A stretch of 64,000 nucleotides of DNA from Epiperipatus broadwayi (GCA_028023455.1 JAQFVV010000005.1:16926001-16990000); one strand, 5' to 3'. Shown: positions 36,463 to 59,180, counted from the first letter of the stretch. Notes: a model not told the origin generated them from the sequence alone. Program-made: numbers and translations.

Positions 36463-36589
36463 AGGCAATATATAGTAGAAATTTGATTATATTTATATAC
36501 GAGGGTTGGTTCAAATCCTTCTGAGTCCTTCAAATTTTTTTTTTGAAGAGCAAAACTAATTAGTTTATATATATATTATTGTTTAATAT

Positions 36590-36850
36590 TTTTCCTAAGA
36601 GCAAGATTAATTAGAGGCTTCCATACATTGTGTATTGCCACACTGGGTTAACTTATATGATTATTAACCATTGTCATATGAGCAGCTTCTTTGAATTTTC
36701 TATGTATTTTTTCCTCTTTATCCAATATCTTTGTATTTTTCCAATTAAACATATGATCATTAGTATATATATGATCTATTATAGTAGACACATCTGTTTT
36801 TTCTCTTTTAACCATTAGTTTATGTTCTTTCAACCGCTGTTCAACAGGGA
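36590..36850 (-). mobile_element. PLE GIY-YIG C-terminal fragment (same family as 24140-24480)
   Basis: MKEHKLMVKREKTDVSTIIDH...HMFNWKNTKILDKE...RKFKEAAH...QPS...WKPLI. Confidence 0.8.
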
Positions 36851-37402
36851 ACAGATCTCACCAAAATATTTCCTTCCAGATCACATGGCTAAACTGAGGA
36901 AAATTCTGGATTGGTATTTTTCTTTGCAGCAAAAAAAATATTTTATTTTCACAACAAAACAATAAAGTTTACAGAAATCATTAAAATGCTGAATAATTGT
37001 GAGTTTAGCTTTTCTGTATGACATTACACAAAAACTTGATCAGTTCAATCGTTTATAGAATGAAACTAAATAATTTCACATATAGCAAATAAAAAATTTG
37101 CTTTTGAAGAATCCAGTATATGCACACATATTTCTACATGAGCACATCCATGTGGTAAAATGAGATACGAAAAATGAGTCATTACATATAATTAAAATGT
37201 TCTTCCACTTCTCCTTCTTATTTGCATTGCTGAATTATATATAATATAATATAATACACCATATACATCTTAATTGACACTCTACAATGCAGTTTAACTT
37301 ATGATTTATTTTTATCTCCTCTTGCCTACACTTTCGACAGTCCAGCAATCATCATCAGAGCTACAACATTTAAACATATACAATTAATATCTGTCTATAC
37401 AT

Positions 37403-40400
37403 GATCATCATCATCAACCATTATCAATCCACTGCAGGATGAAGGTCACTCCCAAATTCAATCCATCTTCTCTGATCTTTAGCTTCTCTTCTTCACATCA
37501 CCCCTGAACACTTTCTTATTTCATCCATCCATCTCACATGTTGGGCTCTTTCTGTGTCTTTTACAATCTTTTGGAATCCAGTTTAAAGTTTCAATTGTCC
37601 ATCTATTATCATCTCTTCTAGCAATATGTCCAGCCCAACTTCTTAAGTCTTTTAATTTTTTCAATGAGGTCAGTAACACCTGTTTGTTCTCTTACCCTTA
37701 TATTGCATTTTCAATCTCTTCTTGTTACTCCCAACATGCATCTCTCCATATTTCTTTGAGTGGTCTGAATTCTCTGCATTGCTCTTCTATTAGGTGTTCC
37801 AAGTCTCAGATCCATAAGTAAAAACTGGTAAAACACATTTATTAAAAACCGTTCTTTACAAACACATAAGCATATTTCGGTTTAGTATCAAGTTATTTCT
37901 GCCAAAAGCACTCCAAACAAGTTTAATTCTATGATTAATTTCATCCATTATGTTTCCATCTGTATTAATAATCTGACATTTGTAACTGTTAACTTCTTCT
38001 AATTCATCATAATCAATCTTTATTTTTATATTTTGAGAAAATCCATTAATCATTACTTTAGTTTGTTTAACATTTCTCTTTAGTCCTACTTTTATCTGAT
38101 ACTTCCTACAACATTTTCTGCAGCTCTAAAGCATTATTTGCAAAAACAAGTAGATCATCTGAAAAATCGAAATGACTTATATAATCTCCATTTACTTTCA
38201 CTCCTTTAGATTCCCATTTTAATCCACAAAATACTTCTTGCAGCACAGCTATAAAACGTTTTGGAGATATGGAGTCACCCTGTCTTACACCCTTCTCAAT
38301 GTTAACTTTCCCAGTATCATTATGTAATATAATTGTTGCTGTTGCATTTTTATAAATATTTTTTAAAATATGACAATATCCTGGATCTATACCCTGATGG
38401 TCCAATGCTTTAATCACTGAAGAAATGTTTATAGAATCATATGCCTTTTCATAATCTACAAATCCAAAGCATAATGGCAACTCAAATTCATTTGGCCTTT
38501 CTATAACTTTTCTCAATACCTGAATATGATCTACTGTACTAAAATCACTTTTAAATCCAGCTTGTTCTCTTGGATGGAAATCCAATGTTCTCTGTAGATG
38601 AATTGTAATTATCTTGATAAAAATTTTGTATAAAACTGATAAAAGGCTGATAGGTCTGTAATTTCTAATATCTTCCTTATCACCTTTTTTAAATATTAAT
38701 ATTAATATTGCATTCTTCCAATCATCTGGTACATCTTTATCATTTAGACCTTTGGTATATAACTTTGCTTAAAAAAATTCTATTTCTTCACTTGTTTCTT
38801 TTAATATATCAATTATAATTCCATCATTACCTGGAGCCTTTCCTTTCATCATACATTTAATTACATGTCTATCTTCTTCATTTAAAATACTGAGCAATTC
38901 AGGAGATGTAATACATATAGGAGGTACTTGTTCTTTATTACTATATAATTCTTGATAAAAGTCTTCTACCCATTTCATGATGTCATCTCTCTTTTTAGTA
39001 ATAACTCCATCTTTTTTTCTTATTGCAGATATAAATTTCCTACCAATACCAAAATGTTGTTTAACATTCTTGAGACTTTTATTCTCTTCTACAGCTTTCC
39101 TTGCTAGTTCACAGTTATACTTTCTTGTATCCTTTTCAACTCCTTTCTGCATCATTTTACAAAATTTGAGATATTCAATCCATTTTAATGCATCATTTTT
39201 ATATATCTTCATGTTCCTTCTTTTCTTCATAAATTCTCTAGTCTCTGTAGAAATTTTATTGGTCAATTGCTGCTTTTTCCTACCAGCTATCTGTTGCAGT
39301 TTTAAAAGTGTATCAGTTATTTTCATATTAATTTCATTCAAATCTGAATCATGTTCAAAATCTACTAATAGTTGAAAACAGTTTGTAAGTTCTAATTTAA
39401 ATTCATTAAAATGTTTCTAAAGATTAGGAATATCAACTGTAAATATTGTTTTTCTTAATAATTTTTGTCTCTCTAGTTTTGCATTAACACGTATCCTACA
39501 TCTTACTAATCGATGATTACTTCCTGTGTTAAATTTATTAAGAACATTAGAATCTTGAAATATGTATTTTCTGTTAGGCAAAATATAATCCAATTCTGCT
39601 GTACCTTCATTTGGATGCTTCCATGTCCATTTGCTTTTAACATTTTTCTCAAAAAAAAAAATTCACAATATAAAGTTTTTATTTTTTTCAAATTCCACAA
39701 GTCTATGCCCTCACTCATTTCTATTACCATAACCAAAATTACCTACAGCACTTTCATTTCTTTATCAATTCTAGCATTAAAGTCTTCAATAACAATTTTA
39801 AAATGTTGTTTACTCCGATCAAAAGCCTTTTGTACATCCATATAAAAAATTTCTACTACTTCATCACTATGAGAACTTGTTTGGGCATAAACTTGAATTA
39901 TATGCATTTGATATCTGCTATTAAGTTGTATAACTAATCTTGCCACTCTGTTCAATACACATCAATCTCAACAATGTTGTTCTTCCACTTATTTATAATG
40001 AATCCTACTCCACTTGTATTTCCAATATTTAGTGCCTTTATAATAGAGTACATGCCCACTTTTTACATCAATTGTCACTTCACCTTTTCTTCTAACTTCA
40101 CAAAGTTAATAATATCCCATTTAATACAAGACAGTTCTTCTACTTCTTCTAATCTTCCTTCACTTGAAAGTGATCTACAGTTGTAAGTACCTAAATAAAA
40201 AGTCATCATCAAATGGCAGCCTGGGACCGCAATCAGAAGATTCTTAGCACCTCCACCTTTAGCCACCAATTGCTGCCTTGGTTGGTGACTTTACATTCTC
40301 CTTGGAATAAGGGTCATGATTTATTTTTGTCTGTCATAATTGTATATATCTATTGGAAAAATATTTGTCATTCACACAAACATTAATTCTGTGTTATTAG

Positions 40401-40663
40401 GCAACTGAGAAGAAAGACCATGGTGTTTCTTGATCTTAAACTCAGAGGTAAAAAGTCAATAAACTTACCATGCTGGCTAATGTGTGTTAGTGAGCAGCCC
40501 ATCAATGTTCATAAACTATATGAATAATCACATAGTAATAACAGCTGCAATGACAAGAATGTATGGAGTGGAAAAGGAATTTACCCTGCTCAGATCCTTT
40601 AAGACCTCCAAGAGGAATCAAAGGGTCTCCTTTCAGTTAATAGCAAACTCCTTTCTGCAGCCA
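37403..40663 (-). mobile_element. Near full-length RTE-clade LINE (APE-RT, frameshifted)
   Basis: LGTYNCRSL, QVYAQTSS, QAGFKSDFSTVDHI, FVDYEKAYDS, GVRQGDSISP, FSDD; (GAT)n 3' tail at 37403-37416; 9-bp TSD TCTATACAT at 37394-37402 and 40664-40672. Confidence 0.95.
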
Positions 40664-43600
40664 TCTATACATATACCACTATATATATACACTCATACAT
40701 ATACAAATATACACATAAATATAAAAATAAAAAACAACATTTCAAACACTCCAACTATTAGCTTAAATATGGAACATTAATATCTCTACAATCTAAAACC
40801 TCTTTATCCCACACTTATATTCAATTAACTTCTTTTATATAAAATTTTATTTTATATTTTATCATTTATTTCTTCATATTCTAATCATTTAAATTTTAAA
40901 TTTGCCCTTTAATCAAATTTATTTCTTCTATTTTAATTACTTATATATTATATATCAATCAATAACAATAATATTAACATAATACCCTTATAATTTTATT
41001 TTCTCTTAATTTTTAATTTTTTAACTAATTTTACCTTTTAAAAAACCTCAGCATTCCTCCTCCTCCTCTAACCAAAAATACTTTCAAAAATTTTTTTAAA
41101 AAAATTATTTCTTTATTTTTTTACCGCTATGCCCTCTATGAACACCTTCTGAAACTATATCTTATTCTAATTCTTTAAAATCTACACATACCTATTCATT
41201 AAAAAACATATTCCTACAAAATTAATGTTTTCAAACCCTGGTCCTTATTCAGAGTTGGCTAATGCTTCTAATCAATATAGCCTTTATCTTTCTATTCCTC
41301 CCATTTTTAGTATGATTTATCATTTTAAATTTCCCTTTTCCCTGTCTCTAATGAATGTAAATAAACAGGTGATCTCCTATCATATCTGTGCTGAGTCAAC
41401 CTTGTGTAAATTGAATTTTTTATTTCCCACACATAACAATTCCTAATATTTTTTTACAAGATTTACACTCTATTCTATATACTTCATTTATACAATTTTC
41501 TATATTTCCTATATATTTATTATCTGAAATATTAAGCATACTCTTTCTTTTCTTATTTACCACTTTAAATTTTATTATATTATTAAACTTTCTATTAATT
41601 CTCCAAATTATTTTATTTATATTCTTTACAATATTACTATTGTGTTTTAATATCCATATATTTATTCTCATTCTTCTTTCTATTATTCTTCTCATTATTA
41701 TTAACAATAAATCTCTCTTTTGACATTCTTATATTATCCTCTATAATCTCTACTGAGTAATCATTACTTTTAAATTTCTTAACTATCAACTCCACTTGCT
41801 TATTATAATCCTCTTTATTTGAGCAATAATTTATAGCTCTATACATTCTTGAAGTAATATTATTTACTTTATATTTCCTATTTATATTTGAATTCCAATT
41901 AGCTATGTTATTATCTTTATTCATAATTAATGGTACAAACTCATACTTTGATAAAACATCAAAGTGGATAAGCAAATAATATTTTGAAAAAATATATAAA
42001 TAGAAGTGGTAATTATTATGTTAAAAATAATAAAAATCTGATAAAGAAAATTAGAGAAAAAGTGGATCAATATAAGAATAATTTAAAATGGTAAAAAGGG
42101 ATGTGATATCAATGTTCATCAATATTAATGTGGAGAAAGCTATAGAAGTGGCAATTAATAGATATAAAAGGATAAGAGTAAGGAAATATAAATACCAATA
42201 GAAAGATTGATAAAGATTATGGAAATTTGTTGCAAAGAAATTACATTAGAGTTTAAAGGAGAGTATTATAAACAACAAAAAGATTTATTAATAGGAGGGG
42301 CAAAAAGTGCAATGGTAAGTGATATGTATATGAAAAGGATAAAAGATTTAATGATGAGTAATAAGAATGCTCCAATATTTATAAAAAGATACATGGATGG
42401 TTATCTATTGATTTTTAATAAAATCCAAAGACAAATACATTTTTTCCTTGAAGAAGTTAATAGTTAGATGAAAGCATAAAATTTACAGTAGAAAAAGAAA
42501 AGGAAAATAAGCCATCATATTTATATATTCTATTAATGAAGACATATTTTAATTGTAGGTATAAAATAGAGACATCAATATATAAAAAGATGAATATAGA
42601 TAATAACATAGCTAATTGGAATTCAAATATAGATAATAAATATAAAGTAAATAATGTTACTTCAAGAATGTATAGCAATGCTCAAATAAAAAGAATTATA
42701 ATAAGCAAGTGGAATTGAACATTAAAGAATTTAAAAGTAATGATTACTCAGTAAAGATTATACAGGATAATATAAGAATGTCAGACAAGACATTTATTGT
42801 TAATAATAATGAGGAGAATAGAATGAAAAATAAAGATAAATATGTGGGTATTAAAACATATAATAGTAATATTGTAAAGAATATAAATAAAATAATTTGG
42901 AAAATTAATAGAAAGTTTAATAATGTAATAAAATTTAAAGTGGTAAATAAGAAAAAAAGACTATGCTTAATATTTTGGACAATAAATATATAGGAAATAT
43001 AGAAAATTGTATAAATAGAGTATATAGAATAGAGTGTAAATCTTATATTAAAAAATTAGGAATAATTATGTGGGTGAAACAAAAAATTCAATTTACACAA
43101 GGATGACTCAGCACAGCTATTATAAGAGATTACCTGTTTATTCACATTCATTAGAGACATGGCATAAGTTTGAAAATGGAAGTATTAAAATGATAAATCA
43201 TATCAAAAATGGGAGGGATAGAAAGCTAAAGGAGGGTGTATTGATTACAAGCATTAGACCAGCTCTTAATAAGGATCAGGGTTGGAAAACATTAATTTTG
43301 TAGGAATATTCTGTTAATGAATAGGTATGTGTAGATTTTAAAGAATTAGAATAAGATATAGTTTCAAAAGGTGTTCATAAAGGGCATAGAGGTGAAGAAA
43401 ATAAATAAATAAAAACAATTTAACAAATTTTTGAAAGTTATTTCAGTTAAAGAAGAAGTGCTGTGATTTTTTAAAAGATAAAATTAGTTAAAAAATTAAA
43501 AATTAAGAGGAAATAAAATTATAAGGCTATTATGTTAATATTATTGTTATTGATTAATGTATAATATATAAGTAATTAAAATGGAAGAAATAAATTAGAT

Positions 43601-43872
43601 TAAAAGGCAAATTTAAAATTTAAATGATTAGAATATGAAGAAATAATTGTTAAAATATAAAATAAAATTTTATATAAAAAATGTTAATTGAATATAAGTG
43701 TGGGATAAAGAGATTTTAGATTGTAGAGATATTCAAGGTCCAGATTTAAGCTAATAGTTGGAGTATTTGAAATGTTGTTTTTTATTTTTATATTCATACA
43801 TATATCTGTATATGTATGTGTGTGTATATATTGTTATATGTATAGATATGTATTAATGGTATATGTTTAAAT

Positions 43873-43920
43873 GATGTAGCTCTGATGATGACTGCTGAAC
43901 AGTTGAAACTATAGGCAAGA
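43873..43920 (+). ncRNA. Minimal hammerhead-like motif in the PLE tail (mirror copy 37360-37318, minus)
   Basis: CTGATGA(43882-88)-T-GACTG-CTGAA-CAGTT-GAAA-CTATAG; stem II paired; stem III rudimentary; the NUH site is ambiguous. Confidence 0.55.
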
Positions 43921-46900
43921 GTAGATAAAATATATCATATGTTAAATTGCATTGTGGAGTGTCAATTAAGGTGTATATGATGTATTATATTATACATATA
44001 ATTAAAATAAATTACTAAATAATTAAAAATGTAATTGTAGTACTTCAATTTCAATAAATATTAGAATAAAAGATATTGATAAGAATGTTCCAGAAGTTAA
44101 ATTTAAATGTACTAATTAATGACGATGGAAACTGTTTTAGGAATGAGTCACATAATTAAAAGGTTTCTACAGACTGAATAAAAAGAATAGAAAAACAAAT
44201 TTGGAACTGATTATAGTAAAGATAAAATATTACGAAAGTAGATCCAGAAAGTTAAATTAATTAAACGCTTTCACAAAGGGATATTTCTGATAAGAGAACA
44301 ATTAAACGACAGATTATAAAAACTTGGAATTGTAGATTTAAGTGCTTCTTTCTCTTTTGTATTGGTGAAGTGCTATTGTGCTCAGAATGAGTATCATTGG
44401 CAACCAGTCAATGTCTGTGAAGGACTAAACCCTGATGTTTCAGAATCTGAAGATATAAAAATCTGACAAGTCTTTAAAACAGATTATCCTGATCTTATTT
44501 TGTTTTATGTAAGCCTAAAGGGTCTTAGGTTTTAACTTGTGGAATTTGTAGCATATTTAGCATAGTTGAAGAAAGTGTCAATTCATTAAATAAGATAAAT
44601 TAATACACTGTACAGGCTTACACCTGCACATACAGATATATATATATATAATATAAGGGATTCAAACTCAGAGTTTCACACAATCCTCAACTCTCCAAAC
44701 CATCTCATATTGCTGATCCATCTGCTAACACACATGTTGAAAAGATAAATAATCACCAATATATGTATTTCATGCTAAACCAGCACTTGTCAGTTGGTCC
44801 AGATTACCATCTCCTCACATACATACAATCAGTGCTCAGCTTTATATTAAGATAGCCAATCTTTATACTTTAATGGACATAATTGTGGGACAATATTGAA
44901 AGAATATTTAAAGACAAGAACTCTGTGATCATTTATTTGTCTGTATATTAATTATGTTTAAGCTTGTATATATATTCTAGTTTGTTTTTGTATAACTTAT
45001 AATAAATCCTTAATACTAAATTTATTTTTAGTTTTTAATTAATTGTGGTCTGTCCTTTCGTGAGTCATGGTTAAAAAGACAACAGTAATGAAATACAAAA
45101 CTAAATACTACATAATTTTCCAACTGCTACGTCCAAGTTCAAAACACACACACACATATATTATAAAAATAAAGTTAATAATAGAAATATATTTTGTTTA
45201 ATAAAATATAGGTTAATTATATAAAGAAATAATCAATGCTAAATAAAGAGATTTTATATTAGATAAAATATTACATGATCACTATCTCATACTAGCACAT
45301 AATTGTTATTAAGCAATTCAAAACAAAGCAATTGAATTGTTAAATAAAATATATTAATTTAAATGATTAAACATAGAGTACTTGTGTATTATCCTGTTCA
45401 CCAAGTTTGGCAGACGATTTTTTTTAAAAAAATGTCTGGTTTTAGGGGCATACAATGAATGTTCTGATAAGTAGTGTATTTAATATTTACATTTAGTATT
45501 ATTATTATTATTTTTAAAAAAAAAATCAACTTATTAATATCAAAAACTTGGTCACATTTAGGTTTAGTTTTTACATTCTTATATTATGAGATATAGTATC
45601 CTATGTTGTGGTCTGTGAAATGTTGAAACATATGTGATCCAAGGGAAAAAAATTGAGCATGGTTGATATGGTGTGATTTGTAGAAGATAGCTTTTGGACA
45701 GATGTCCATGATTGTATCTATTTTCAACTTAAAACATTTAATGGTTAAACTTAAAATAAACTATAAGACATTTCTTTAGTCAAAAATAGATATTACTGCA
45801 TATTGCTAAAACATCATAAATTTACAGCTTCTAAACAGCTCACTACAAAGGCCTTTGCAACAATGCTTATAAGGAATGATGAAGATAGCCATCCTAATCT
45901 TGCAGACAGCTGGGGGAAGAGAGTTTGAATAGTTTTCCATTATTATTCTATCTTAATTAAGAATAACTAGATACCCATTTTCCAATCAATATTTGATGAT
46001 TAGATAGTTTAGCAATGGAATAGGTACTTGAAAGATAAATCCCAAATATGATGAAAAATTTTACTTGCTTCATATTTAAAGCAAGGTGAATAATTAAAAA
46101 TAATTAAAATCTTGGGATAATTTATAATTTTGGTACTTACATGTTAGTCCTGTGACATGGAGCATGTATTTGGCATGCTGTGCCTTTTCACATTCATATC
46201 AAACTGCTGATAATTTTTGAATCTTGTGATCTAACCAAAATAATGTGTGCACAGATCTTGTACATGATATTTTCACAAGATTTACAAAGTTATCAACAGG
46301 TTGAATATGCATGTAAAAATGCTACAGGTTGAATACGTATGTAAAAAGGTATAGCATATCTAAAATGTGGTCTGTGTTAAGAACAAAAATACTATTTCCA
46401 CACAAAAAAATATATACAATTTGGGGTATAATTTACAAAAAAAATCAATCTTAAAAATTACACTTTTAACAACAGTTAAAAAAAAAATTAATTTGCCATT
46501 AAGAAATATATATGACATTCACAGGAAAAATATAAAATATGGTGCAGAAAACAAATTAATAACAGTATTGAAAAAAAATCCCTGATCTTAAAAAGTACAT
46601 TTGTATGACTTTTTACAGGAAAAAATGTAAAAGATGGTGCAGAATATACATTTATAATAATATATTAAACAGTACATTTTGAAACGATCAATATGTAAAA
46701 TATGAGGTGTTATTATGGACAAAACAATGACTAAATTACAAAAATTGCCTGAAATATTATTTAAAAAAGCATAAAATATACACATACATTACTTACTGTG
46801 CAATATATATAACAGGAATTCTCACAATGAATAAATGTAAGTTGTCTGTTGTACTTTATTATAAGGCGATCAAATTTTCTGGAGAAAATGGAGTGTTCAA

Positions 46901-47149
46901 ATAAAAAAAATTCCCTCCAAAATGAACACATGATGGAGCATATATTGCCTGAATGGGATTTTGTTGAAAAACAGTAATAAATAAATGTACTTTTTTTTAA
47001 AATAAATAAGTAATCAAAATTATTCACAAAATAAAAACACATAGCACTTTTATAAATTATTCATATTGCCAATCAGTCAATTTTTTAGTTTCATTCATTA
47101 TGCAAATGAATGCATCATTTTTATGACATCTATACCACCTAAATTTGGC

Positions 47150-47530
47150 CAAATATGAATCTAGGTGTTGCTGCCTTTCTCAGTTGCTTATTATGCCATT
47201 TCAAGCAGTGGGTAGAATATCATTGACAGATTAACCATCAATGATACCTATGGCCAGATCAAGGCTACACAAATGTACATCCCTGACTATATTTCCTAAC
47301 CATGCACTTCTCCATACTGCTAAAACAACACCCACCATCCAAAGTACTTAATTTGTTTTGAGAACAAGTCTCAGGGGCCACTTGACCATATAAGTTATAT
47401 ATATATTGTACCAAATGAAAAGATTTTTCTTCGCATATACTGACCACAAGGGCGCCACTAGTCCTAAAATTGGAACTAGACATTTATTTTAAGGGTGGGC
47501 AGGATATATGAACATGAATGCACTGGACTA
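47150..47530 (+). mobile_element. Possible eroded gypsy RT/RNase H fragment
   Basis: FVLRT...ILYQ...FAYTDHK motif order. Confidence 0.3.
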
Positions 47531-48467
47531 GCTCAATTAAGCAAATGAGATCTTATGTTTTGTTCTGAAAGTTGGAAAGGGTAGCAACAGGAAACAAAAT
47601 CAACTAAGTAAAATGAATAAATATTTTATTAGTAGTATGATTAAATAAACATAAATCTAGATAACAAACTTTAAAATCCACTTAAAACAATACTATTTGT
47701 ATGTTAATCAGAAACTAAAATATTTCAACATGGATTAGAGAGTGATTTCCTATACGTGATACAATTATATGGGAAAGAATGCAAAAATACTGACAGTAGC
47801 AAAAGTACTAGTAAGTATTCAGTGATCTCATGTAACTAAAGGGAATTAGCTTCTTGCTTATAACCAATAGTCATGAAAAGAATGAATCTCCATAATTGAG
47901 ATTTCTTAGAGCTTATGCCAAAACAGAAGAAATGTGAAGATAGCTTCCAAAACATTAACTTTAAGAAACAAAACAAGGGCATTGAAAGTTATTACTTTCA
48001 ATCAATTGACCTCCCTCAGAGTGAGACAGGCTAGGAGCTCACAATCTACTTATTGAAAGGATTAAAACAATCATACATGCTCCTAATAAATGAAATGGAA
48101 GCTCTAAGGAATGAAACTAAATGCTATTATATTTCATAATAGTATATTACAAATAATTAGTGTCTCAACATAAATCAGACTAATAACAAAAATGGTTCAC
48201 AAGCCAGAAGCTAATTATAATAGTCTGTAATATGTAGACTGCTCTCTATAACAAATAGAATGTGAGATTACAATTAAGACTCCACTATCTTACTTATTAA
48301 AACTTGAATGGAACATAACAGCACTGGTTTGAAGCTAGCACTTGTTTAAGAGAAAAATATCAATGCACAGAAACTGAATTACACAAAATAAAAATAAAAA
48401 CTTGAAACACATGTATATTTAAAAAGAAAACAAATTTAAGACAATAAAATTATTTAAATTGTAGAAT

Positions 48468-49230
48468 CAGCAAGCATCACATGATCGCATCTCCAATACT
48501 AGCACACAACAGTTTATAAACAAAGCAAAGCAAAACTCCATATAGTAGTGCCACCTGTGCTAAACAGAGTAATCAATGGATTAGATCCTAAGATCTAGAT
48601 GCAGTGCTCTCAGATCCAAAGCTCCTCACTGACAAAGGCCACAAGCCCCAGAAACTAGTCTGGGGATATTGGATGAGTAGGCATTAGATAGGGATTTTAT
48701 GCACAAGCCTTCTGGCATCCATTGATTACTCAGTTTAGCACAGGTGGCACTACAATATGGAGTTTTGCTTTGCTTTGTTTATAAACAATTGTGTGCTAGT
48801 ATTGGAGATGTGATCATGTGATGCTTGCTGGTTTAACACCAATCCTGCCTAATAGGGTAGTGGTGGCTATGGTTGTTAAAGAGCCAAAAACACCAAAATG
48901 TATGGGTGCTGAACTGAGTTCAGACCCATATGACTATATAAGCTATTGAGCTTAGATTGAAAATATTTTTTGTTTTCAATTTCATGCTCATAGTTTTGTA
49001 GTTAAGTAGAGATAAAAGTTGGTTGCTAGAGGGTTGCATTAGATCCTAAGATCTAGATGCAGTGCTCTCAGATCCAAAGCTCCTCACTGATGAATTATGC
49101 AAGCCAGAAACTAGTCTGGGGATATTGGATGAGTAGGCATTAGATAGGGATTTTATGCACAAGCCTTCTGGCATCCATTGATTACTCTGTTTAGCACAGA
49201 TGGCACTACTATATGGAGTTTTGCTTTGTT
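48468..49230. mobile_element. Retrozyme-family insertion: 113-nt arm plus ~1.4 inverted units (period 458), two hammerhead motifs
   Basis: 15-bp TSD TTTAAATTGTAGAAT at 48453-48467 and 49231-49245; inversion at ~48580. Confidence 0.92.
49081..49122 (+). ncRNA. Type I hammerhead ribozyme motif (retrozyme)
   Basis: UCCUCA-CUGAUGA-AUUAUGCAAGCCA-GAAA-CUAG-UC-UGGGGA. Stem I 6 bp, intact core, GUC cleavage triplet (C49116), palindromic ACUAGU in place of stem III; stem II poorly paired in this copy. Confidence 0.8.
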
Positions 49231-52200
49231 TTTAAATTGTAGAATGTAAGGTACCTTAAAAAATTAGTTAAACAATAGTGCACTAGGCTTATTGAGCAAG
49301 GTCCATTGATCTGGATTCACTGATTGTAGGTTTGGACAAGTTGGTTAATGGTTTCTTTATAATTCGTTCTTATGGCAATATAGATAGTTAATGGAGACAC
49401 AGGGAGCACAAACCTGTCCTGGCAAAAAGCTTAGAAAACCATGGTATGAGAAAATATCCTTCTAAGTTAAATAATTGCAGAATCAGCTTTCTTTCAGAAT
49501 ATGCGGAAATCATTCTTCTCTCAGAGTTTTTTGCAGGAATAGTTTGTGCAAGTACCTCTCAAAGTTTGTGCAAGTATCTCCTCGATTAAGCCTTTTATAG
49601 AAGAACCTCTCATATCTGAACCAATTACAAAACTTTCTCTTTTTAATTAAAATTTATAAAAATTTTCATCCAACTAACAATAGCTGTGCAATTAAAGAAA
49701 AGAAATTGCCTTTTACAGATCAAGGGATTAACAAATGAAAAATTCTTTTCTTTCTTTAATTAGTCACTCTTATCAATATAAATCTTAAAACTGAACGGCA
49801 ATTTATTTATACAATTCACCTTTACAAATTTGTGGGGAGGTTTTTCAAAATTAAAAACTAAATATAGCTGTGGGGTTAAAATATAATTCTCACATACATA
49901 CACATATATATTTTACAGTAAAAAAACAACAACTTTTAATCAGATTTTATAAACAAAATCTAACTTATATAAATTTATTTTTATCCCTATAAAACTTCAA
50001 CTTTGTAATGGTGTTTTAAGCATCCATTACAATATTGTAACCTTAGAAAATATATGATGATTCATAAGCTCTAAAATCTTCAGCTTTAGCCTTGCCCCTT
50101 CTCTCTCTACCTCACTCACACACACAGACACACAAACTTCAGTGTGGATGGCCATGTAATCAATGATGATGGGAAAATATATAAGAAATTGCCAAGGCAT
50201 CAAATTGCAACTTTAATAGAAAATCTATTCATTTTATTATTATCTATTAATAACTTATTTAATCATCTACATTAATAACTGATGAATGAGTTAACAAATA
50301 AAATTTTAAATGAATAAACACTGAGAGCAAAATTACTACTAATAATAATCTCGTAATTTATCACTTTTATTGGAGCAGAAGAAAATCTCATCTCAACTCC
50401 TCATTTTACACTATCTCTCTCAGCACACTCCCCCTCCATATGACATTAAAGCTACAATTAAATTTAAGAAAATCTAAACTATTTCCATGTCCATCGTCAT
50501 CCTCATTTTCCATCACTCTACCATGCTTTCATTTATAATTCAATTTTGCGAACATTCGTAATTACTCATTATAAATTTCTTTCTTTATTTTCTTACTAAT
50601 TGTTACTTTGCTAACTCTTCTCTATTGTATAATCTTATCACAGGGCTTCAGAACAGCAAGGTGTGAAAATTAACACTTGGATACAAATTATTAGTGATAC
50701 TTGAATACACTCCCAGAGACGACAATGGCCATCGACCTTGGCTCAGTTTAACCTAGCCAGTCCACTTTCTATCTTTCCAAATAATTAAGATTAAATTTTA
50801 ATTATAGATCTTGTTGGCAAAATACCATGAACACTTTAATAATTTAGAAAATTTGACTAATTCTACTGCATACTATACACTTTAAATTTTATGTTACTAA
50901 ATTAATTTACTTGTATTCCACACACTTGATAATTTAAATTTGCAGTGTTAAAATAATTTTCTCTTCTATCAAATTTGGTAATAAAACTTTTTAAAATAAT
51001 CTCTCAAGTAATTTAACCCAGGTGTAGAGTTATTAACTACATCATAATTAAATTTAAGTAATATTGTATTGGTGTATGATTAGGATTTCCAGAATTTATT
51101 GAATCCACAAAACATTGAGACACAGACAAGATTTTATTTGTAATTACAACATTTTATTAACAATAATAAACTAAAACAAATTTCATATGATACCATCTGA
51201 TTTCTTTCAACTCCACAGACATTTAGTGTGATAAGTGTCTTCTGATTGTTGATAGTAAGGTAAAGGATACTAAGTTTCTGAATTTTGCTCTAAGAATCCG
51301 TGAAGTTGAGTTGTAAGTCATCAATTAAACATTGAATATTTTAATAATTTTTAAGGTTTAATTTGAACAATAAGTGTATACTAAGTTAATATAAATCGTG
51401 TGACTTTTTGATTTATTCTAACATCTTGAGAAGGTTCATTTTGAACAAAAATCGATTTGATGTAAATAAATTTATTATTTATTAATTCAAATATAGTTGT
51501 CTATAATATTTGTTTATATTTTTACACAAAAATATATTTACATTATCTATATAGTTAACCTGTAGCTTTCCCCAGTTCTTCAACAATAAAAAAAAAAACA
51601 ACTAAACATCAGGTATTAATTAATTGGGTAATCATCTGAAATCCAGCATGGCCACTTGGGGCATTGTTTATGTGTCAAAACACATAAAAATGTCATTTAC
51701 TATTGCCAGCCTTATGGCTAATGCAACATTTAATATTGTAATAACCCATTATGGCAGGCTGCTTTACATGACATTGACACAAAAATATTACGGCCCGTTT
51801 TGTGCTTCGAAACTATTTACGTGTATTTTTTCTATTCATAGCTGATTACCATATCGTTTGAGGGTGTTTGAATTTCAAGTTGGTACAACTTTTCAAATCT
51901 CCATAATAGATTAATGTCATTTATATTTAAATAATGTTGTTAATTACTAATAATTGTCATATGGTCCCCACCCTTCCCTAAAAAAATGTTAATATGTAAA
52001 AAATTGGCAAAATGTATGTTCGAACACACACGCTAAGTCACATTTCAGCGTGGAAAATATACGAGACCAATAAAAGGTCTGAGAAGAACATGCAATTTTT
52101 AAACTTTTCAGAATTGCCGAGTACAGAAAGTGTGTGAGATTGTGTCCTTTTTTCAGGCACATAATGTCCACTTTTTATTACAGCAATAAAATAATAAATA

Positions 52201-52264: not shown

Positions 52265-53010
52265 GATTATATTTTTTGCAGTGGAGTTAAAATAAATGAC
52301 TATTTTTGTTGACTTTTTGTTAATAATAACAAAGTACGACACACACACCCCCAAAGCAGTTTATTGTAGAAGGCAAAAAAAAAAGGTAATTCAAATGAAA
52401 TATAAATAAAAGTAAAAAGTGAGAAAAAGTTGTTGCAAAAAAAAGTAAATTATTGACTTTTTGTTACAATTCTTTTTCCGAGTGTGGGAGTTTTAAAACA
52501 ATTTTTTATCCCCAAATAAAGACAAAAGTTACTTTTTATTTAATAAGAAGAAAAACAATTTGGTCAACCCCTAAAAAAAAGGTTGAATAAATTCGAAATA
52601 ATACCCAAATAATTGCATTATATTTTTTCATCAGGGTTAAAACAAGTGGGTTCAAATAAATGACTATTTTTGTTTACTTTTTGTTAATAATAACAGTACG
52701 AAAGCCCCCAAAAAGCTGTTTATTGTAGAAGCAAAAAAAAGGCTAATTCAAATGAAATATAAATAAAAGTAAAAAGTGAAAAAAGTTGTTTAAAAAAAAG
52801 TAAAATTATTGACTTTGTTACAATTATTGATCCAAGTGTGGGGGTGGGGATTTCAAAACAATTTTTGAACCCCCAACAACACAAAAGTTACTTTTGATTT
52901 AATAATAAGAAGAAAAACAATTTAGTCAAACAAAAAAAAAAGGTAGAACAAAGTCGAAACAATTCCCAAATAATTATCCCATGATATTTTTTCAGTGGAG
53001 TTAAAACAAG
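52265..53010. repeat. Two diverged ~365-bp tandem units, possibly subterminal in a hAT-like remnant
   Basis: aaataaatgactatttt recurs at ~52290 and ~52654 with colinear homology throughout. Confidence 0.8.
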
Positions 53011-55456
53011 TTTTTTCGTCATGAAACAGTCCAAAGTTTTAAAATTCAAAAAATTAAATTACCAAAATTTGTTGGATAAAGAAAAATATCAGATTAAAAA
53101 AAAAACAACGAAAATGAATATAAAAATTTGTTTAATAAAAAAAAACAAAAAACATGTTCTATAAAAAAAAAAAAAGGTTGCAGGTCCCGGTAACATTATA
53201 TTTGATTGATTTTTGTATAGCATCAACACCCCAAGCATCTGTGCCCAGATTTCAGATGATTACCATTAATTGTTGAAAAAAGACAATATTATTAAATTAA
53301 CAATAAACTGGGGTTTACAGCTACTACGGACTGACTTTTGTTCTGCGATCAGATGACTAAACAATCCTAACTTTAAATAATTCAAGTAACATTTTAATCT
53401 AATAACACTTATTATTAATTTCCTAAATATACTTTTAAACTCTAAATAACATTATTTACTATACAGTTGCTAACATTCCATGAAGAATACTCTTCATGAA
53501 GAAATGAACTAATAATTTATGCCTCAATTAAATCACATAATATGCCTAGGTAACTTATTTTTGAATTTTAAATATTTTACAGCATTTTCCTACCCTAGCA
53601 TGCATTAAATAACTGTTCAAGTGTTAAAAGAATCGGTACACATAGTGATCATAGTCTCACCTACACACACGTAAATCATCTAACAATGTCCCCATGGGAG
53701 TAGCATTTTTGTATTATCAAATAAACATTTTACTTTTCAACTTCAAAATTCAACTTGATAATTATTCTTGGTCTCAACTAGCTATGTAAAGCTAAATCAA
53801 GCACAATGCATCAGTACAACAAATCGCACATTCGAACTCACTTTCACAAAAAAACAGCAGATTGATTCAATGATCCTGATAATACAGTTAATAACTTAAT
53901 ACTCTATTTCTCTAAATAATATACACCCATAAGGAAAAGAATTTAACATCAATATGAGTGTTGGCAAAGACCCATAACCAGAGATATAACACCTTTTTAT
54001 TAGGGCTGAAATATGCTAGGACTATTCGCTAAGCATACAAATATGGATGGGCTTGCACAAGACCCAAGGGCTATCAATAAAGAAATCATCTTATGGTGTA
54101 ACTAAACATGAAGTGGGAAATTCATTCACAACTTTTAACTACTTATAACATTTTAATGACCATTTGGTGAGTAGCTATGCTTCAGCTTCACTGGCTCGGT
54201 GGTAATCATTTAAGCGATCTCGAGCAAACAAGGGTCCTTCACCAATCCACACACACACACATATGAAAATTTAAACCTACTCTCCCCATGAAATATTGTA
54301 CTGATGCATGAGCCAACAATTTCATAAGCTTAAATATGCTTACATTTAACATCATTTTCTATTTTTAACAAGAAGAAACAAGAAATATGCATCATTTACC
54401 TAATCATGTTCTCCCCCCTCCCTCCTGGGACTAGTGTATCTCATTCTATTACGACATACATTCCAAAAGAAAACATAAATTTTATTAACATTGCAATTTT
54501 AAATAATAACCCATTCTTTTATAAAAACATTTTGTACTATAAATATTTTCATTCACATCTTTCATTCATATAATTTAGGATAAAGCAATCATTTTATAGT
54601 TAAAGAAGGCATATTTTAAATTATGATACTAACTCAAACTTAGAATAAATATTGATTAACTTTAAATTCAGGCATATAAGTAACTAGTATTCTAACGCAT
54701 CAGCTAATACAGCTTCAAAAAAATATATAAAATAACAATGAACAAAAGAATAATACTTATTCTCTGATCGATACAGTTCTCCAAAGTCCTTTTGCATCCC
54801 TGCAGTTGCAAAACATCCCTTATAGTTTTGTGTGCACACTTTATTTGAACACTTAATCCATGGAAATTTTAATAAACTATTTCACTCAGTAATCCGTATG
54901 GTTGAGCTATTAAGTTCGAAGTTTATCAATACAGGGCTACTTTTAAACATTAGAAATAATAGTCCAAAGGATATTTATTTATTTTACAGATTCACATTAT
55001 TTGACACAAGCAGGCTGTATAATTTAATAAAGTAATAATTTTTAAATAGCATTTTAATTCCTTTATGCAGTTTAATGTTCCTTAACTGAGAGTTTATTCA
55101 ATATTATAATGGAATACGTAATCAACTTTCTCTTAATTTTTCTTTCCAGACAAGTAAGTCGGTTCACTATAGCTAAGGTTGGTGAAGTCCAATAATTCTT
55201 GTATATTTTTACAAGAATTATAGCACTATATTCCTTAAATTTTTTCATAAGTAGGTAGTATATCAATTTGATCAATAATATATTTTTGTCTAAGTATTAA
55301 TTATTTAATTTTTCATTAACAACTCATCTTTTCAAGTCATCAAAGATCCAGGAAATATTTTGGCGGGATTTAACATATACCACATTTGCATTATAATTCA
55401 GTTCCATATTTTTCATTGACAGTGATAAATTTCTTAAATTTTCTATAGTACAAATA

Positions 55457-57053
55457 TATAAGTAAGCATTTATTTTATAGCGTCTGCATATAATTGTAAT
55501 TTACATTTATATCGGCCATTCAAACCAATTGTGCAAACGCTTTGCGAGTGTTAAATAATAAATGAATGCCTTCTGATCAATACAAGATATAGAATTTATG
55601 CAGAATAAAAAGGATCCTCTTATTCCTACGACTCAAATATTTATATATGAGCAAATCTGAAGTACTTGCACAGAAGGCGTGACGATAGAACGGTCACTTT
55701 TAAATCACCATATACAAAGTCTGAACGAATGACGCGATGAAATTTCCTAGAATTTACTAAACGTCATTCCAACTGAAACTTAATCATATATATAAGTAAG
55801 CATTTATTTTTATAGCGTCTGCATATATTTGTAATTTACATTCATATCGGCCATTCAAACCAATTGTGCAAACGCTTTGCGATTGTTAAATAATAAATGA
55901 ATGCCTTCTGATCAATACAAGATATAGAATTTATGCAGGAATAAAAAGGATCCTCTTATTCCTATGACTCAAATATTTATATATGAGCAAATCTGAAGTA
56001 CTTGCACAGAAGGCGTGACGATAGAACGGTCACTTTTAAATCACCATATACAAAGTCTGAACGAATGACGCGATGAAATTTCCTAGAATTTACTAAACGT
56101 CATTCCAACTGAAACTTAATCATATATATAAGTAAGCATTTATTTTTATAGCGTCTGCATATAATTGTAATTTACATTCATATCGGCCATTCAAACCAAT
56201 TGTGCAAACGCTTTGCAAGTACTTCAGATTTGCTCATATATAAATATTTGAGTCGTAGGAATAAGAGGATCCTTTTTATTCCTGCATAAATTCTATATCT
56301 TGTATTGATCAGAAGGCATTCATTTATTATTTAACACTCGCAAAGCGTTTGCACAATTGGTTTGAATGGCCGATATGAATGTAAATTACAATTATATGCA
56401 GACGCTATAAAAATAAATGCTTACTTATATATATGATTAAGTTTCAGTTGGAATGACGTTTAGTAAATTCTAGGAAATTTCATCGCGTCATTCGTTCAGA
56501 CATTGTATATGGTGATTTAAAAGTGACCGTTCTATCATCACGCCTTCTGTGCAAGTACTTCAGATTTGCTCATATATAAATATTTGAGTCGTAGGAATAA
56601 GAGGATCCTTTTTATTCCTGCATAAATTCTATATCTTGTATTGATCAGAAGGCATTCATTTATTATTTAACACTCGCAAAGCGTTTGCACAATTGGTTTG
56701 AATGGCCGATATGAATGTAAATTACAATTATATGCAGACGCTATAAAAATAAATGCTTACTTATATATATGATTAAGTTTCAGTTGGAATGATGTTTAGT
56801 AAATTCTAGGAAATTTCATCGCGTCATTCGTTCAGACTTTGTATATGGTGATTTAAAAGTGACCGTTCTATCGTCACGCCTTCTGTGCAAGTACTTCAGA
56901 TTTGCTCATATATAAATATTTGAGTCGTAGGAATAAGAGGATCCTTTTTATTCCTGCATAAATTCTATATCTTATATTGATCAGAAGGCATTCATTTATT
57001 ATTTAACACTCGCAAAGCGTTTGCACAATTGGTTTGAATGGCCGATATGAATG
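55457..57053. mobile_element. 335-nt-unit family: ~2.3 forward plus ~2.5 inverted units
   Basis: taagtaag at 55459, 55793 and 56129; inversion at 56214-56216 via TGC microhomology; 13-bp TSD TATAGTACAAATA at 55444-55456 and 57054-57066; units nearly identical. Confidence 0.95.
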
Positions 57054-57399
57054 TATAGTACAAATAGTTATAGCCATTCATTCTTAAAAGTGAAGGTTTG
57101 AAATAAAAATTTCATAAAACTTATCACTTCCTTAATTTTTCCAGGGTAAAATTTTAGCTGCGCTCAATATTGCATTACTCTCTGATTGTTTAAGGTGATT
57201 AAGATTGTATAGGAAATCACAATGATGGTCAACTTCAGGGAAAAGCAATATATGCCTGATAGAAAGTTTACTCACAAATCATATTTTACAATAAATTTTA
57301 ATTAAATTTTCCATTCAGAAATTGATCCAGGACAACAATAAAAACTTAACATTTAAAATTTGAAAGTGATAATTTAAATCTGAATGAGTTCTCCCTAAA

Positions 57400-59180
57400 T
57401 GCAAAAATGATGATCAAGCCCCTTCTTAAAGGGTGGTTAATTTATTACCTGCTATATCCCCCCCACCCTCAATCTCTGAGTGACACTTCTTGTCAATTAA
57501 ATTATATTAAATTTTTAATTGGTGGTTTATTATTTTATAAATTATCTATTCACACTTTTACAGACATCACATGGTTTTGTTGAATTTTCCCGCTTGTGAA
57601 AAACCCCTTGAAAAACTAAAAATGGCCAAGTCATCCACCTGGGATTTATATTTTGGTAAGATCATTCCTGGACAATTTGCGGCAAAGCCTCAGAACTTCT
57701 TAGGCTTCCCTATATTTGAATTCACCTCTGCCATGAGATCTGTCCAAAATAAGCTATTTCAATGTACACAGATCACATCCTCCCTATCCAAAGTTTACAT
57801 ATCCATGTTGGCCGCCAAGTCCTCCCTTATCAATATGCTAATATTCCCCAGAATATCCTATTTTACCCCAGTGGTCAATTTCACCAAAGTCTTCATCAGG
57901 AAGATACACAAGATGTGCACTGATCTGATTAGAAGAGGCAGAAGTGCAACCATCAGCTTGAGAAGCCTGCAGAAACACACAAAGCTCAATGGGTTATCCC
58001 TACATTCCATACATTTATATTTCAGTGTTCCTAAAACTCTGTCTACAGAATGTGCCTAGAGTATCCTGACTCCTTGCCATTTAAGGAGATCTCTCCCACA
58101 GACAAGCCTACCCCTGTTAACACTGGTTCACTGGCAACCCTCACATCTCTTATCTCCAAATTTACTACTCTTCCTAACAAGCCAACCTCAATGAAAATCA
58201 ATTTCTGGAAAGCATACTACATCCTTAATCCTGATGTTTCTGCAGGATCAACTCTCCACTGGCTTAACAACCATCTGCTAATCAATAAATTTAAGCTATG
58301 GTTTCTTGAAACCCAAATTCTTTAACTTCCTGTTGAAGATAAACCTCAATGCATTGCCTACTAAACATTTTATTGTACACTGCCAAGGATTCTCAAACAT
58401 AGATTCCACTTGTACCCTATGTCTCACAGAAGAGGAAACTTCTCTTCACCTCCTCTGCCACTGTGTTTTCCTTCAACCCTACAAAGCCCTTATAGCCTCC
58501 ATACTAAATGACAAAAAGCTCCTTATCTACTCTCATTGACAATATCCTGTGTGGATCCATCCCAGAGATATGCTCATCAACATTCTTGTTTTCATTATGG
58601 TACACCCGGTGCTGGCTTACCTTTAATCATGCACTGGAGTGTCCACTTGATTTATACATTGACAAAATGGAAAAATTTGGAAAAGGGGCCAGAATTTGGC
58701 CTCCTCTTACATCTATGATGCCACATGGAAGCTAATTGATTTACCTCCCTAAGGCAGATCCCTTTCATACCTGAATACATATCTCCTATCATGGAAATGA
58801 TTAGTATTATTTTAATTTAAAAACAAACAAATAGAAAGTACCTATTGTTAAATAAGAAATGAGACTTTTCCTATAGTAAAGAAATATATTGTTACTTTGA
58901 ATTTAAAATAAACAAAATTTGATTAAAACAAAAAAAAAACTTTTACATAAATAAATCTACAACTACAGATTACTCATGTAACCAAAGCAGCCTAAGCTAT
59001 GTAAAACTATGTAACTAATCCACAGTATGTAAAAATTCCTGTAATGTGGTGTAAAATAAAATCAATTTTTATATATGTAAACCTACAACTACGGATTGCC
59101 CATGTAAACTCAGCAATCCAAGCTATGTAATCTCTTGTAACCTTTAAGACAAATAAAGCTTATCATTATAAAAAAAACTA
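57400..59180 (+). mobile_element. L1/Tx1-clade LINE 3' fragment (late RT, zf-RVT, tail)
   Basis: FLGFP...LINMLIFPRISY...KLNGLSL; KFFNFLLKINLNALPT...CTLCLTEEETSLHLLCHC; AATAAA and A-run near 59150-59178. Confidence 0.75.

Follow-up and report, generated by a model that had tools for sequence, protein, structure and literature searches.

Between positions 55457 and 57053 of a 64,000-nt stretch of the Epiperipatus broadwayi genome assembly (GCA_028023455.1, JAQFVV010000005.1:16926001-16990000; the whole stretch is hereafter the window) lies a 1597-nt element composed of a repeated, non-coding 336-nt unit arranged as a fold-back, which raises the question of how a sequence without coding capacity came to be inserted there in two opposite orientations. 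An earlier note on this DNA, made from the sequence alone, had described some 4.8 near-identical units of 335 nt and had proposed as explanations either a new self-cleaving motif or a circular RNA, devoid of a ribozyme, that is processed in another way. The analyses presented here make it probable that the locus is a single young insertion of a hammerhead-less, non-coding, non-autonomous retroelement, integrated by the reverse transcriptase (RT) and GIY-YIG endonuclease of a Penelope-like element (PLE).

Anatomy and integration of the 336-nt concatemer

Tandem Repeats Finder (TRF) assigned a period of 336 to two blocks at the locus (2.3 copies at 55454-56220 and 2.5 copies at 56214-57063, with 97-98% matches), which confirms the tandem repeat described in the earlier note, where the unit was given as 335 nt. 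At this period the element amounts to 4.75 units (1597/336), and it is flanked by an exact 13-bp target-site duplication (TSD), in agreement with its previous description as one TSD-flanked insertion (Table 1). A repeat finder showed the two blocks to be mutually inverted, with arms that are 99% complementary. The copies of the unit within the element are 98-99% alike and differ in total by 9 private substitutions and 2 one-base deletions, an apparent tenth copy difference at the centre of the element being the inversion junction itself; because the copies differ so little, the insertion is taken to be young.

Defining the plus strand of the right arm as sense, the left arm runs on the minus strand from unit position 130 to position 219, and the right arm starts at unit position 4, makes two full turns and stops at position 171. 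The outer ends of the element are asymmetric, with the left arm extending 47-48 nt deeper into the unit than the right; this tail is present only at the left outer end, and the right outer end carries no tail sequence. Microhomology of 2-3 nt was observed at both outer junctions and at the centre of the element: the last 3 bases of the left TSD (ATA) and the first 2 bases of the right TSD (TA) fit the unit as well, and the two arms overlap at the inversion junction.

Table 1. Positions of the features of the 336-nt element and of related features of the window.
Feature	Position	Strand	Details
Left TSD copy	55444..55456		13 bp, TATAGTACAAATA; exact match to right copy
Left arm	55457..56216	-	2.27 units, 760 nt; sense 3' end at left outer flank
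One-sided tail	55457..55503	-	47 nt (48 in consensus unit); unit positions 172-219
Head-to-head inversion junction	56214..56216		TGC microhomology between arms; sequence read directly
Right arm	56214..57053	+	2.5 units, 840 nt; sense 3' end at right outer flank
Conserved hairpin domain	56562..56654	+	~95 nt; includes 14-bp G.U-containing hairpin 56591-56621
Other hairpin-domain copies	56226-56318, 56898-56990	+	
Other hairpin-domain copies	55902-55994, 55567-55658	-	
3' stem-loop domain	56680..56742	+	10-bp closing stem around two small hairpins
Right TSD copy	57054..57066		13 bp, TATAGTACAAATA; exact match to left copy
Fold-back	16214-17089		12-bp TSD; 308-nt family
Fold-back	18326-18685		17-bp TSD; 308-nt family
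Fold-back	27436-28773		13-bp TSD; tail ~52 nt
Fold-back	48468-49230		15-bp TSD; tail ~55 nt
RT-like piece	42204-42464	+	Upstream of GIY-YIG piece; YxDG/D-like motif
GIY-YIG homology	43052-43300	+	83-codon piece, YVGET...H...H...R...E...N; minus-strand mirror ~41420-41707

As the earlier note had stated, the unit contains no open reading frame (ORF): every frame on both strands is interrupted by 6-9 stops per unit, with 42 codons as the greatest open length. ARAGORN identified no tRNA-like part in the unit, and neither end of the element bears poly(A), a microsatellite or a 3' tail resembling that of a long interspersed nuclear element (LINE). Within the window, blastn revealed no further copies of the unit, matching only a related 308-nt family, and no paralogous empty site was found. 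Two 22-23-mers of conserved unit sequence had no matches in metagenome, viral or prokaryote genome contigs, and three 21-25-mers of the unit had none in paper text.

The published properties of PLEs offer a framework for this anatomy. In PLE insertions, partial tandem copies adjoin an inverted, 5'-truncated copy, and one of the two ends bears a tail of 30-40 bp (PMC8557442, PMC3846280), and their TSD is variable in length, since the distance between the two strand cuts varies (PMC8557442). Purified PLE protein cuts both strands and extends them, initiating reverse transcription at two neighbouring positions within the RNA; these positions are not homologous to the target, and what lies between them constitutes the tail. 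In the same in vitro system, hammerhead mutants insert as well as the wild type (PMC11167929). Furthermore, whole PLE clades lack hammerheads (PMC8557442), the sequences of the pseudo-long terminal repeats (pLTRs) are enough for mobilisation in trans (PMC3846280), and animal retrozymes have been proposed to be PLE-dependent (bioRxiv 10.64898/2026.07.22.740005). Because hammerhead-less PLEs likewise insert as tandem-plus-inverted copies that have a one-sided tail, a ribozyme is not needed to generate this architecture.

Applied to the 336-nt element, PLE-type integration would start from a sense RNA with at least 2.5 tandem units, as set by the length of the arms, which could arise by read-through of an existing tandem copy or, less likely, from a circle. 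The endonuclease would make a staggered break with cuts 13 bp apart, and from both exposed 3' ends cDNA synthesis would begin on the RNA, at two fixed sites within it (unit positions 171 and 219) that are separated by approximately 48 nt. The resulting antisense cDNAs would extend to 840 and 760 nt, their 3' ends would be joined via the TGC microhomology, and fill-in would produce the head-to-head fold-back with its one-sided tail and 13-bp duplication. The left-only extension of 47-48 nt would then correspond to the PLE tail, that is, to the stretch that separates the two RT start sites. The ribozyme-less alternative raised in the earlier note comes close to this model, except that its circle is dispensable, since a multimeric linear transcript suffices.

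The architecture of the 336-nt element is common in the window. At least four further TSD-flanked fold-backs are present, each with a one-sided tail (33-55 nt), and all five TSD-flanked insertions, the 336-nt element included, take the fold-back form, with TSD lengths of 12, 13, 13, 15 and 17 bp. The two insertions of the 308-nt family, with TSDs of 12 and 17 bp, are independent of each other because they are only about 80% alike, and they end at the same two unit positions, which is direct evidence that the termini are fixed in this group.

A sixth fold-back (40662-43850) is a large palindrome containing decayed PLE coding sequence that reads outward in both arms, and the polarity of these arms, with central 5' ends and outward 3' ends, follows the rule inferred for the 336-nt family. 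Its GIY-YIG piece matched 14 proteins in phmmer searches at E<=1e-3; six of the eight that were scanned match PF01541, five of them at or above the Pfam cutoff. The Atlas clusters nearest to the RT-like piece carry RVT_1 or the combination HTH_animal+GIY-YIG+RVT_1, and BLASTP of this piece against P0007 returned no match. An RT followed by a C-terminal GIY-YIG domain is a hallmark of canonical PLEs.

Several observations weigh against attributing the insertion to a PLE. Searches of the window with blastn identified no autonomous PLE sharing the unit sequence, its one PLE remnant included; RT and GIY-YIG are known in the window as decayed copies only, and Pfam run directly on these decayed RT and endonuclease remnants gave no score. 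The tail of 47-48 nt exceeds the 30-40 bp reported for PLEs. It is in the 308-nt family that the termini are shown to be fixed, and for the 336-nt family there is only one contig of assembled reads (run X1), which departs from the unit exactly at 56765, the position of the left-arm terminus, and hints at another insertion using the same end. Finally, the window also contains, as a potential mobiliser, a stop-interrupted LINE-type RT remnant (38106-39341, minus strand; RVT_1 E 1e-13 at 38106-38585), which might be another source of RT activity in this genome.

This remnant bears on an explanation in which a LINE (non-LTR) RT and endonuclease generated the element by twin priming on the same RNA. 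In L1 twin priming, reportedly described by Ostertag and Kazazian in 2001, cDNA synthesis on a single RNA is primed from the two ends of a staggered break, and the product carries an inversion with microhomology as well as a TSD. Integration by a LINE is favoured by the products of L1 twin priming, which have an inverted 5' part, a TSD of variable length and microhomology where the inversion occurs. It is also favoured by the fact that metazoan retrozymes were originally filed as non-LTR elements (PMC7229834). Set against this are the lack of poly(A), microsatellite or LINE-like 3' tails, and the fact that the outer ends of both arms fall within 3'-proximal sequence, at two discrete positions and with a one-sided tail, an arrangement that has been called unique to PLEs (PMC11167929). 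Moreover, L1 twin priming is a minority outcome, whereas five of the five TSD-flanked insertions in the window are fold-backs. Integration by a LINE is for these reasons considered unlikely.

Two further observations stand apart from this comparison. A LINE-dependent short interspersed nuclear element (SINE), for which a Pol III head (tRNA, 7SL or 5S) and a LINE-like or A-rich 3' tail would be expected, was considered as a candidate and rejected on the basis of the ARAGORN result and the missing A-tail, likeness to LINE 3' ends having been compared inside the window. Separately, a 364-nt tandem repeat (2.0 copies, 83% matches) is located 2.4 kb upstream of the element, at 52280-53011.

Strand-specific RNA structure and the search for a ribozyme

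The unit was folded as a circle on both strands, and the minimum free energy (MFE) of each fold was compared with that of dinucleotide shuffles. The sense unit reaches -79.7 kcal/mol, as opposed to -60.7 +/- 4.8 for its shuffles (z -3.94), with none of 300 shuffles folding as well, whereas the antisense unit (-49.0 kcal/mol) is practically equal to its shuffles (-48.4; z -0.12). Linear folding yielded z-scores of -3.73 for the sense and -0.87 for the antisense strand, and those of 20 control pieces of 336 nt from the same window ranged from -2.1 to +2.6. These results bear out the earlier observation that the plus strand of the right arm folds better, and the folded strand is also, as had been pointed out, the one predicted from insertion polarity to be the RNA template.

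Every helix named in the earlier note was recovered in the circular MFE structure of the plus strand, namely the 14-bp hairpin with three G.U pairs (56255-56285 and its repeats), the GCCUUCUG/CAGAAGGC and GAAUGACGU/GCGUCAUUC stems, and the GUGAC/GUCAC and GCUCA/UGAGU hairpins. Because 15 of the 116 pairs in the sense fold are G.U, the structure is confined to one strand, and DNA palindromes cannot account for it. The short terminus of the element (unit position 171) falls inside the 3' stem-loop domain, and the tail holds the 3' strand of its stem; in this structural model, the 3' stem-loop would be the likeliest element for recognition by the RT. More generally, the predicted strand-specific structure most likely serves either RT recognition or stabilisation of the template.

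Comparison with the 308-nt family suggests that part of this structure has been conserved. Insertions of this family were the first and repeated match of a lenient blastn search with the 336-nt unit, always sense to sense, and local alignment of the two units (identity ~54%) scores 17, compared to 11.4 +/- 1.3 for shuffles and 11 for the antisense strand. RNAalifold, applied to six copies from three lineages, predicted the ~95-nt hairpin domain, of which the 14-bp hairpin forms part, as well as another hairpin. The proportion of paired cells in this alignment is 87.8% on the sense strand and 70.1% on the antisense strand, against 42-52% when the partners are slid by 1-3 columns, and two-sided changes occur at 11 pairs, against 0-4 in the slid controls. 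These compensatory changes appear supportive, not decisive, of a conserved structure, as the structure was drawn from the very sequences on which it was assessed, and no more than three of the lineages are independent.

A covariance model of the hairpin domain scored 75-102 bits on the sense strand over both families (75-83 bits on the sense-strand copies of the 336-nt element) and 14.5 bits on the antisense strand, and in the window it matched only these two families. The 308-nt family also has a closing stem whose position corresponds to that of the 3' stem-loop of the 336-nt unit, and this stem changes from AAACGC/GCGUUU in one insertion (A) to AAGCGC/GCGCUU in the other (B), an exchange of an A-U for a G-C pair. 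The overall fold of the 308-nt family is not significant (z -1.5 and -2.4). As an independent observation on another of the fold-backs, the 456-nt unit at 48775-49230 shows very strong structure in the outward (sense) direction, with a z-score of -6.2 versus -3.1 for the antisense strand.

To these folds we added searches for known ribozymes. All 4227 Rfam families were scanned with cmscan at E<=10 against both strands of 55300-57200, a region in which the concatemer covers every circular permutation of the unit. The scan returned no ribozyme class at the locus, the only hits being one palindrome-driven microRNA (miRNA) model and a small nucleolar RNA (E=9), and no model of a known ribozyme (hammerhead, twister, twister-sister, pistol, hatchet, HDV-like, hairpin or VS) matched there. 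Over the whole window no Rfam ribozyme reached its gathering score, and the 308-nt family presented only palindrome-driven miRNA matches; such matches fall at the centres of the fold-backs.

The absence of a CUGANGA...GAAA hammerhead, already remarked on in the earlier note, also held under relaxed conditions. CUGANGA is missing from the sense strand, which has no CUGA whatsoever, and neither strand contains CUGANGA followed by a helix of at least 3 bp and GAAA with up to one mismatch. Visual inspection for hammerhead cores with covariant 3-8 positions identified only AUGAUUA (A3-U8 type) at 56769-56775, which lacks both helix II and GAAA and is expected by chance about 0.5 times.

Elsewhere in the window, a hammerhead-core-like motif, CUGAUGA-(GACUG..CAGUC)-GAAAC, is found three times, at 10238-10275 (+), 37332-37358 (-) and 43882-43908 (+), the last of these just past the right arm of the 40662-43850 fold-back; helix III and the cleavage site are not obvious in these motifs. 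Rfam misses all three at gathering score, and both of those located in 36500-49500 at E<=1. Because the scan also missed these motifs, themselves only putative, its negative result at the 336-nt locus is weaker evidence than it would otherwise be.

The structural data and the ribozyme searches bear in different directions on a second explanation, according to which the element derives from a retrozyme-like circular RNA with an undescribed self-cleaving or self-ligating motif, which would be self-excised from multimeric transcripts, circularised and reverse transcribed by a rolling-circle mode, and which would be compatible with mobilisation by a PLE. The strong structure of the sense strand, and of the sense strand only, speaks for it, as do the retention of the hairpin domain with compensatory changes across two families, the length of the arms, which at more than two units require a multimeric or circular template, and the limited weight of the Rfam negative. 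On the other side stand the lack of any Rfam ribozyme match on either strand of the concatemer, the lack of a hammerhead core at one mismatch beyond the sole AUGAUUA, the sibling 308-nt family, which is not significantly structured overall, and the hammerhead-less PLE clades, which make the same architecture without a ribozyme (PMC8557442). The searches thus provided no positive evidence for the new self-cleaving motif proposed in the earlier note; we judge the retrozyme-like explanation to be quite unlikely, and the structured RNA is probably not a ribozyme.

Copies and probable transcripts of the 336-nt family in sequencing reads

Reads were searched in the form of assembled Logan contigs, using a query of 683 letters that consisted of one unit plus flank. 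In a DNA run of the same organism, the summed word depth, which is not a copy number, is ~0.2-1.9 million over most bins of the unit and ~17,000-74,000 over 56833-56878, and the exact contig of the single-copy flank has a depth of ~32. Contigs matching the query number 3619, with identities from below 90% to above 99%. This DNA run suggests that the 336-nt family comprises on the order of 10^4 unit copies and has a long history. Regarding the insertion site, the right flank at 57063-57400 was seen to be moderately repeated (summed DNA depth of 100-1300 versus ~32 for the exact contig), and one 86%-identical contig aligns from exactly 57054, the first base of the TSD, like an insertion-free paralogous site.

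The satellite-like depth of the unit (a summed word depth of ~10^6 against ~32 for the single-copy flank), its tandem arrangement, and long inverted arms built of tandem repeats that recall Foldback elements would also fit an origin at the DNA level, be it through reintegration of an extrachromosomal satellite, as a Foldback or miniature inverted-repeat transposable element (MITE) type of DNA transposon, or as internal repeats of a Helitron. The ends of the element are, however, offset by 47-48 nt, so they are not mutual inverted repeats, and TSDs of 12-17 bp among like insertions differ from those left by a DDE transposase. The two independent 308-family insertions end alike, unlike the products of random circle breakage, and a strand-specific structure with compensatory changes via G.U pairs points to selection on RNA. 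An origin at the DNA level is accordingly rated as very improbable.

Two specific candidates were rejected individually. A Foldback or MITE element is at odds with terminal inverted repeats that do not reach both ends and with a TSD of no fixed length. A Helitron, whose internal repeats, like those of another DNA element, the earlier note had named as a case that would contradict its reading, is ruled out by the exact 13-bp TSD, given that Helitrons produce none, and by the end sequences, which in sense orientation read ...GAATG and ...CTTATA, whereas Helitrons have 5'-TC and 3'-CTRR ends with a 3' hairpin and insert between A and T; the offset ends and variable TSD lengths likewise argue against DNA elements of this kind.

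Transcription is suggested by two small runs of two organisms, presumed to be RNA, in which the unit has a depth of 10^2-10^4 and the flank is not seen. One of their contigs continues into GATCGTCGGACTGTAGAACTC, which we take to be the reverse complement of the Illumina small-RNA 5' adapter, and these runs are therefore probably small-RNA libraries. Transcription of the 336-nt unit is thus likely. Joints at which a contig goes back by 335/336 nt are present in both of these runs, as a circular RNA would predict, and also in the DNA run; because the DNA run has them too, they indicate tandem DNA and are not evidence for circles.

In run X2, a probable small-RNA library from a related species, a 93-nt contig covers the hairpin domain (56897-56985) with a depth of ~2963, the other listed contigs of the unit having depths of ~3-16, and small RNAs may derive preferentially from the hairpin domain, or this domain may persist as a stable fragment. 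This contig carries G56931U together with C56953G, a double change from G-C to U.G that keeps the pairing on the sense strand only and that can be counted in favour of the retrozyme-like explanation, as well as U56945C, which converts G.U to G-C, and G56927A, which opens the outermost pair. One contig of the hairpin domain was also found in a third organism.

A further observation concerns 56762-56785 (unit positions 216-239) and its repeats, directly after the long terminus, where TATATATA has a TCAGTT initiator-like motif some 20 nt on. A similar spacing of TATA box and initiator has been described for the pLTRs of rotifer PLEs (PMC3846280), and each 336-nt unit might carry its own promoter. 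A scan of the unit for bacterial promoters and terminators, with a tool unsuited to this host, was empty.

We give little credence to the 336-nt sense RNA being a small circle, whether without a ribozyme or with a new one, in which the hairpin domain or the 3' stem-loop would supply an undescribed self-cleaving/ligating motif or would act as a signal to a nuclease and a ligase of the host. If it were correct, it would reveal a second, hammerhead-independent route to retrozyme-like circles in animals.

Implications and comparison with known systems

If integration by a PLE is correct, the 336-nt family constitutes a natural experiment on the role of the hammerhead in Penelope-type retroelements, with a hammerhead-less family at ~10^4 copies residing beside families with putative hammerhead-like motifs and leaving the same integration scars. 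It would extend the non-autonomous PLE derivatives of animals beyond retrozymes, and the conserved strand-specific stem-loops near the two inferred RT starts would become concrete candidates for the RNA signal of the PLE RT. To our knowledge, no RNA signal recognised by the RT is known for any invertebrate PLE. In genome annotation, fold-backs of this kind can easily be mistaken for satellites, MITEs or miRNA-like hairpins. The family would also lend weight to the view that PLEs can dispense with the ribozyme for their mobility, or even that the ribozyme is a parasite of this mobility (PMC8557442, PMC11167929).

Among known systems, metazoan non-LTR retrozymes (PMC7229834; 10.64898/2026.07.22.740005) share with the 336-nt element AT-rich, non-coding units of small size (170-400 nt) that form short tandem arrays, TSDs of more than 4 bp, copy numbers in the thousands per genome, predicted RNA folds that are branched and stable, and a proposed dependence on PLEs. 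In contrast with the 336-nt unit, each described retrozyme unit contains a type I hammerhead, by which the monomer is defined, and descriptions of retrozymes include no head-to-head fold-back with a tail. The satellites of Brachionus (154 and 143 bp, GC-rich; PMC8447722) are unrelated to the 336-nt unit.

With L1 twin priming the element has in common the priming from two ends on one RNA, the inversion microhomology and the TSD. In L1, however, poly(A) is found on one side and the inverted part is internal to a linear RNA, whereas both outer ends of the 336-nt element are 3'-proximal sites of a repeated template and bear no A-tail.

The likeness to PLE insertions (PMC8557442, PMC3846280, PMC11167929) extends to partial tandems with an adjacent inverted copy in head-to-head orientation, an extension at one end, variable TSDs, AT-rich targets, the extension of both strands from two internal RT starts, putative in the 336-nt element, and a dispensable hammerhead, which Naiad and Chlamys lack. 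The 336-nt element differs from them in having no ORF, and thus being non-autonomous, in a unit that measures only 336 nt and is present 2.3-2.5 times per arm, and in a tail of 47-48 nt instead of 30-40. Non-autonomous Chlamys elements such as MRC1 of Chlamydomonas (PMC8557442) are likewise hammerhead-less, non-coding and PLE-dependent, with pLTRs and multicopy head-to-tail insertions; these elements are algal and have 3'-end sequence in common with known autonomous families, whereas the host of the 336-nt element is an animal.

Taken together, the 336-nt element is retrozyme-like and lacks the hammerhead by which retrozymes are defined, and it has the structure that defines a PLE-type insertion. 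It is filed here not as a categorically new system, but as a hammerhead-less, non-autonomous PLE-type retroelement.

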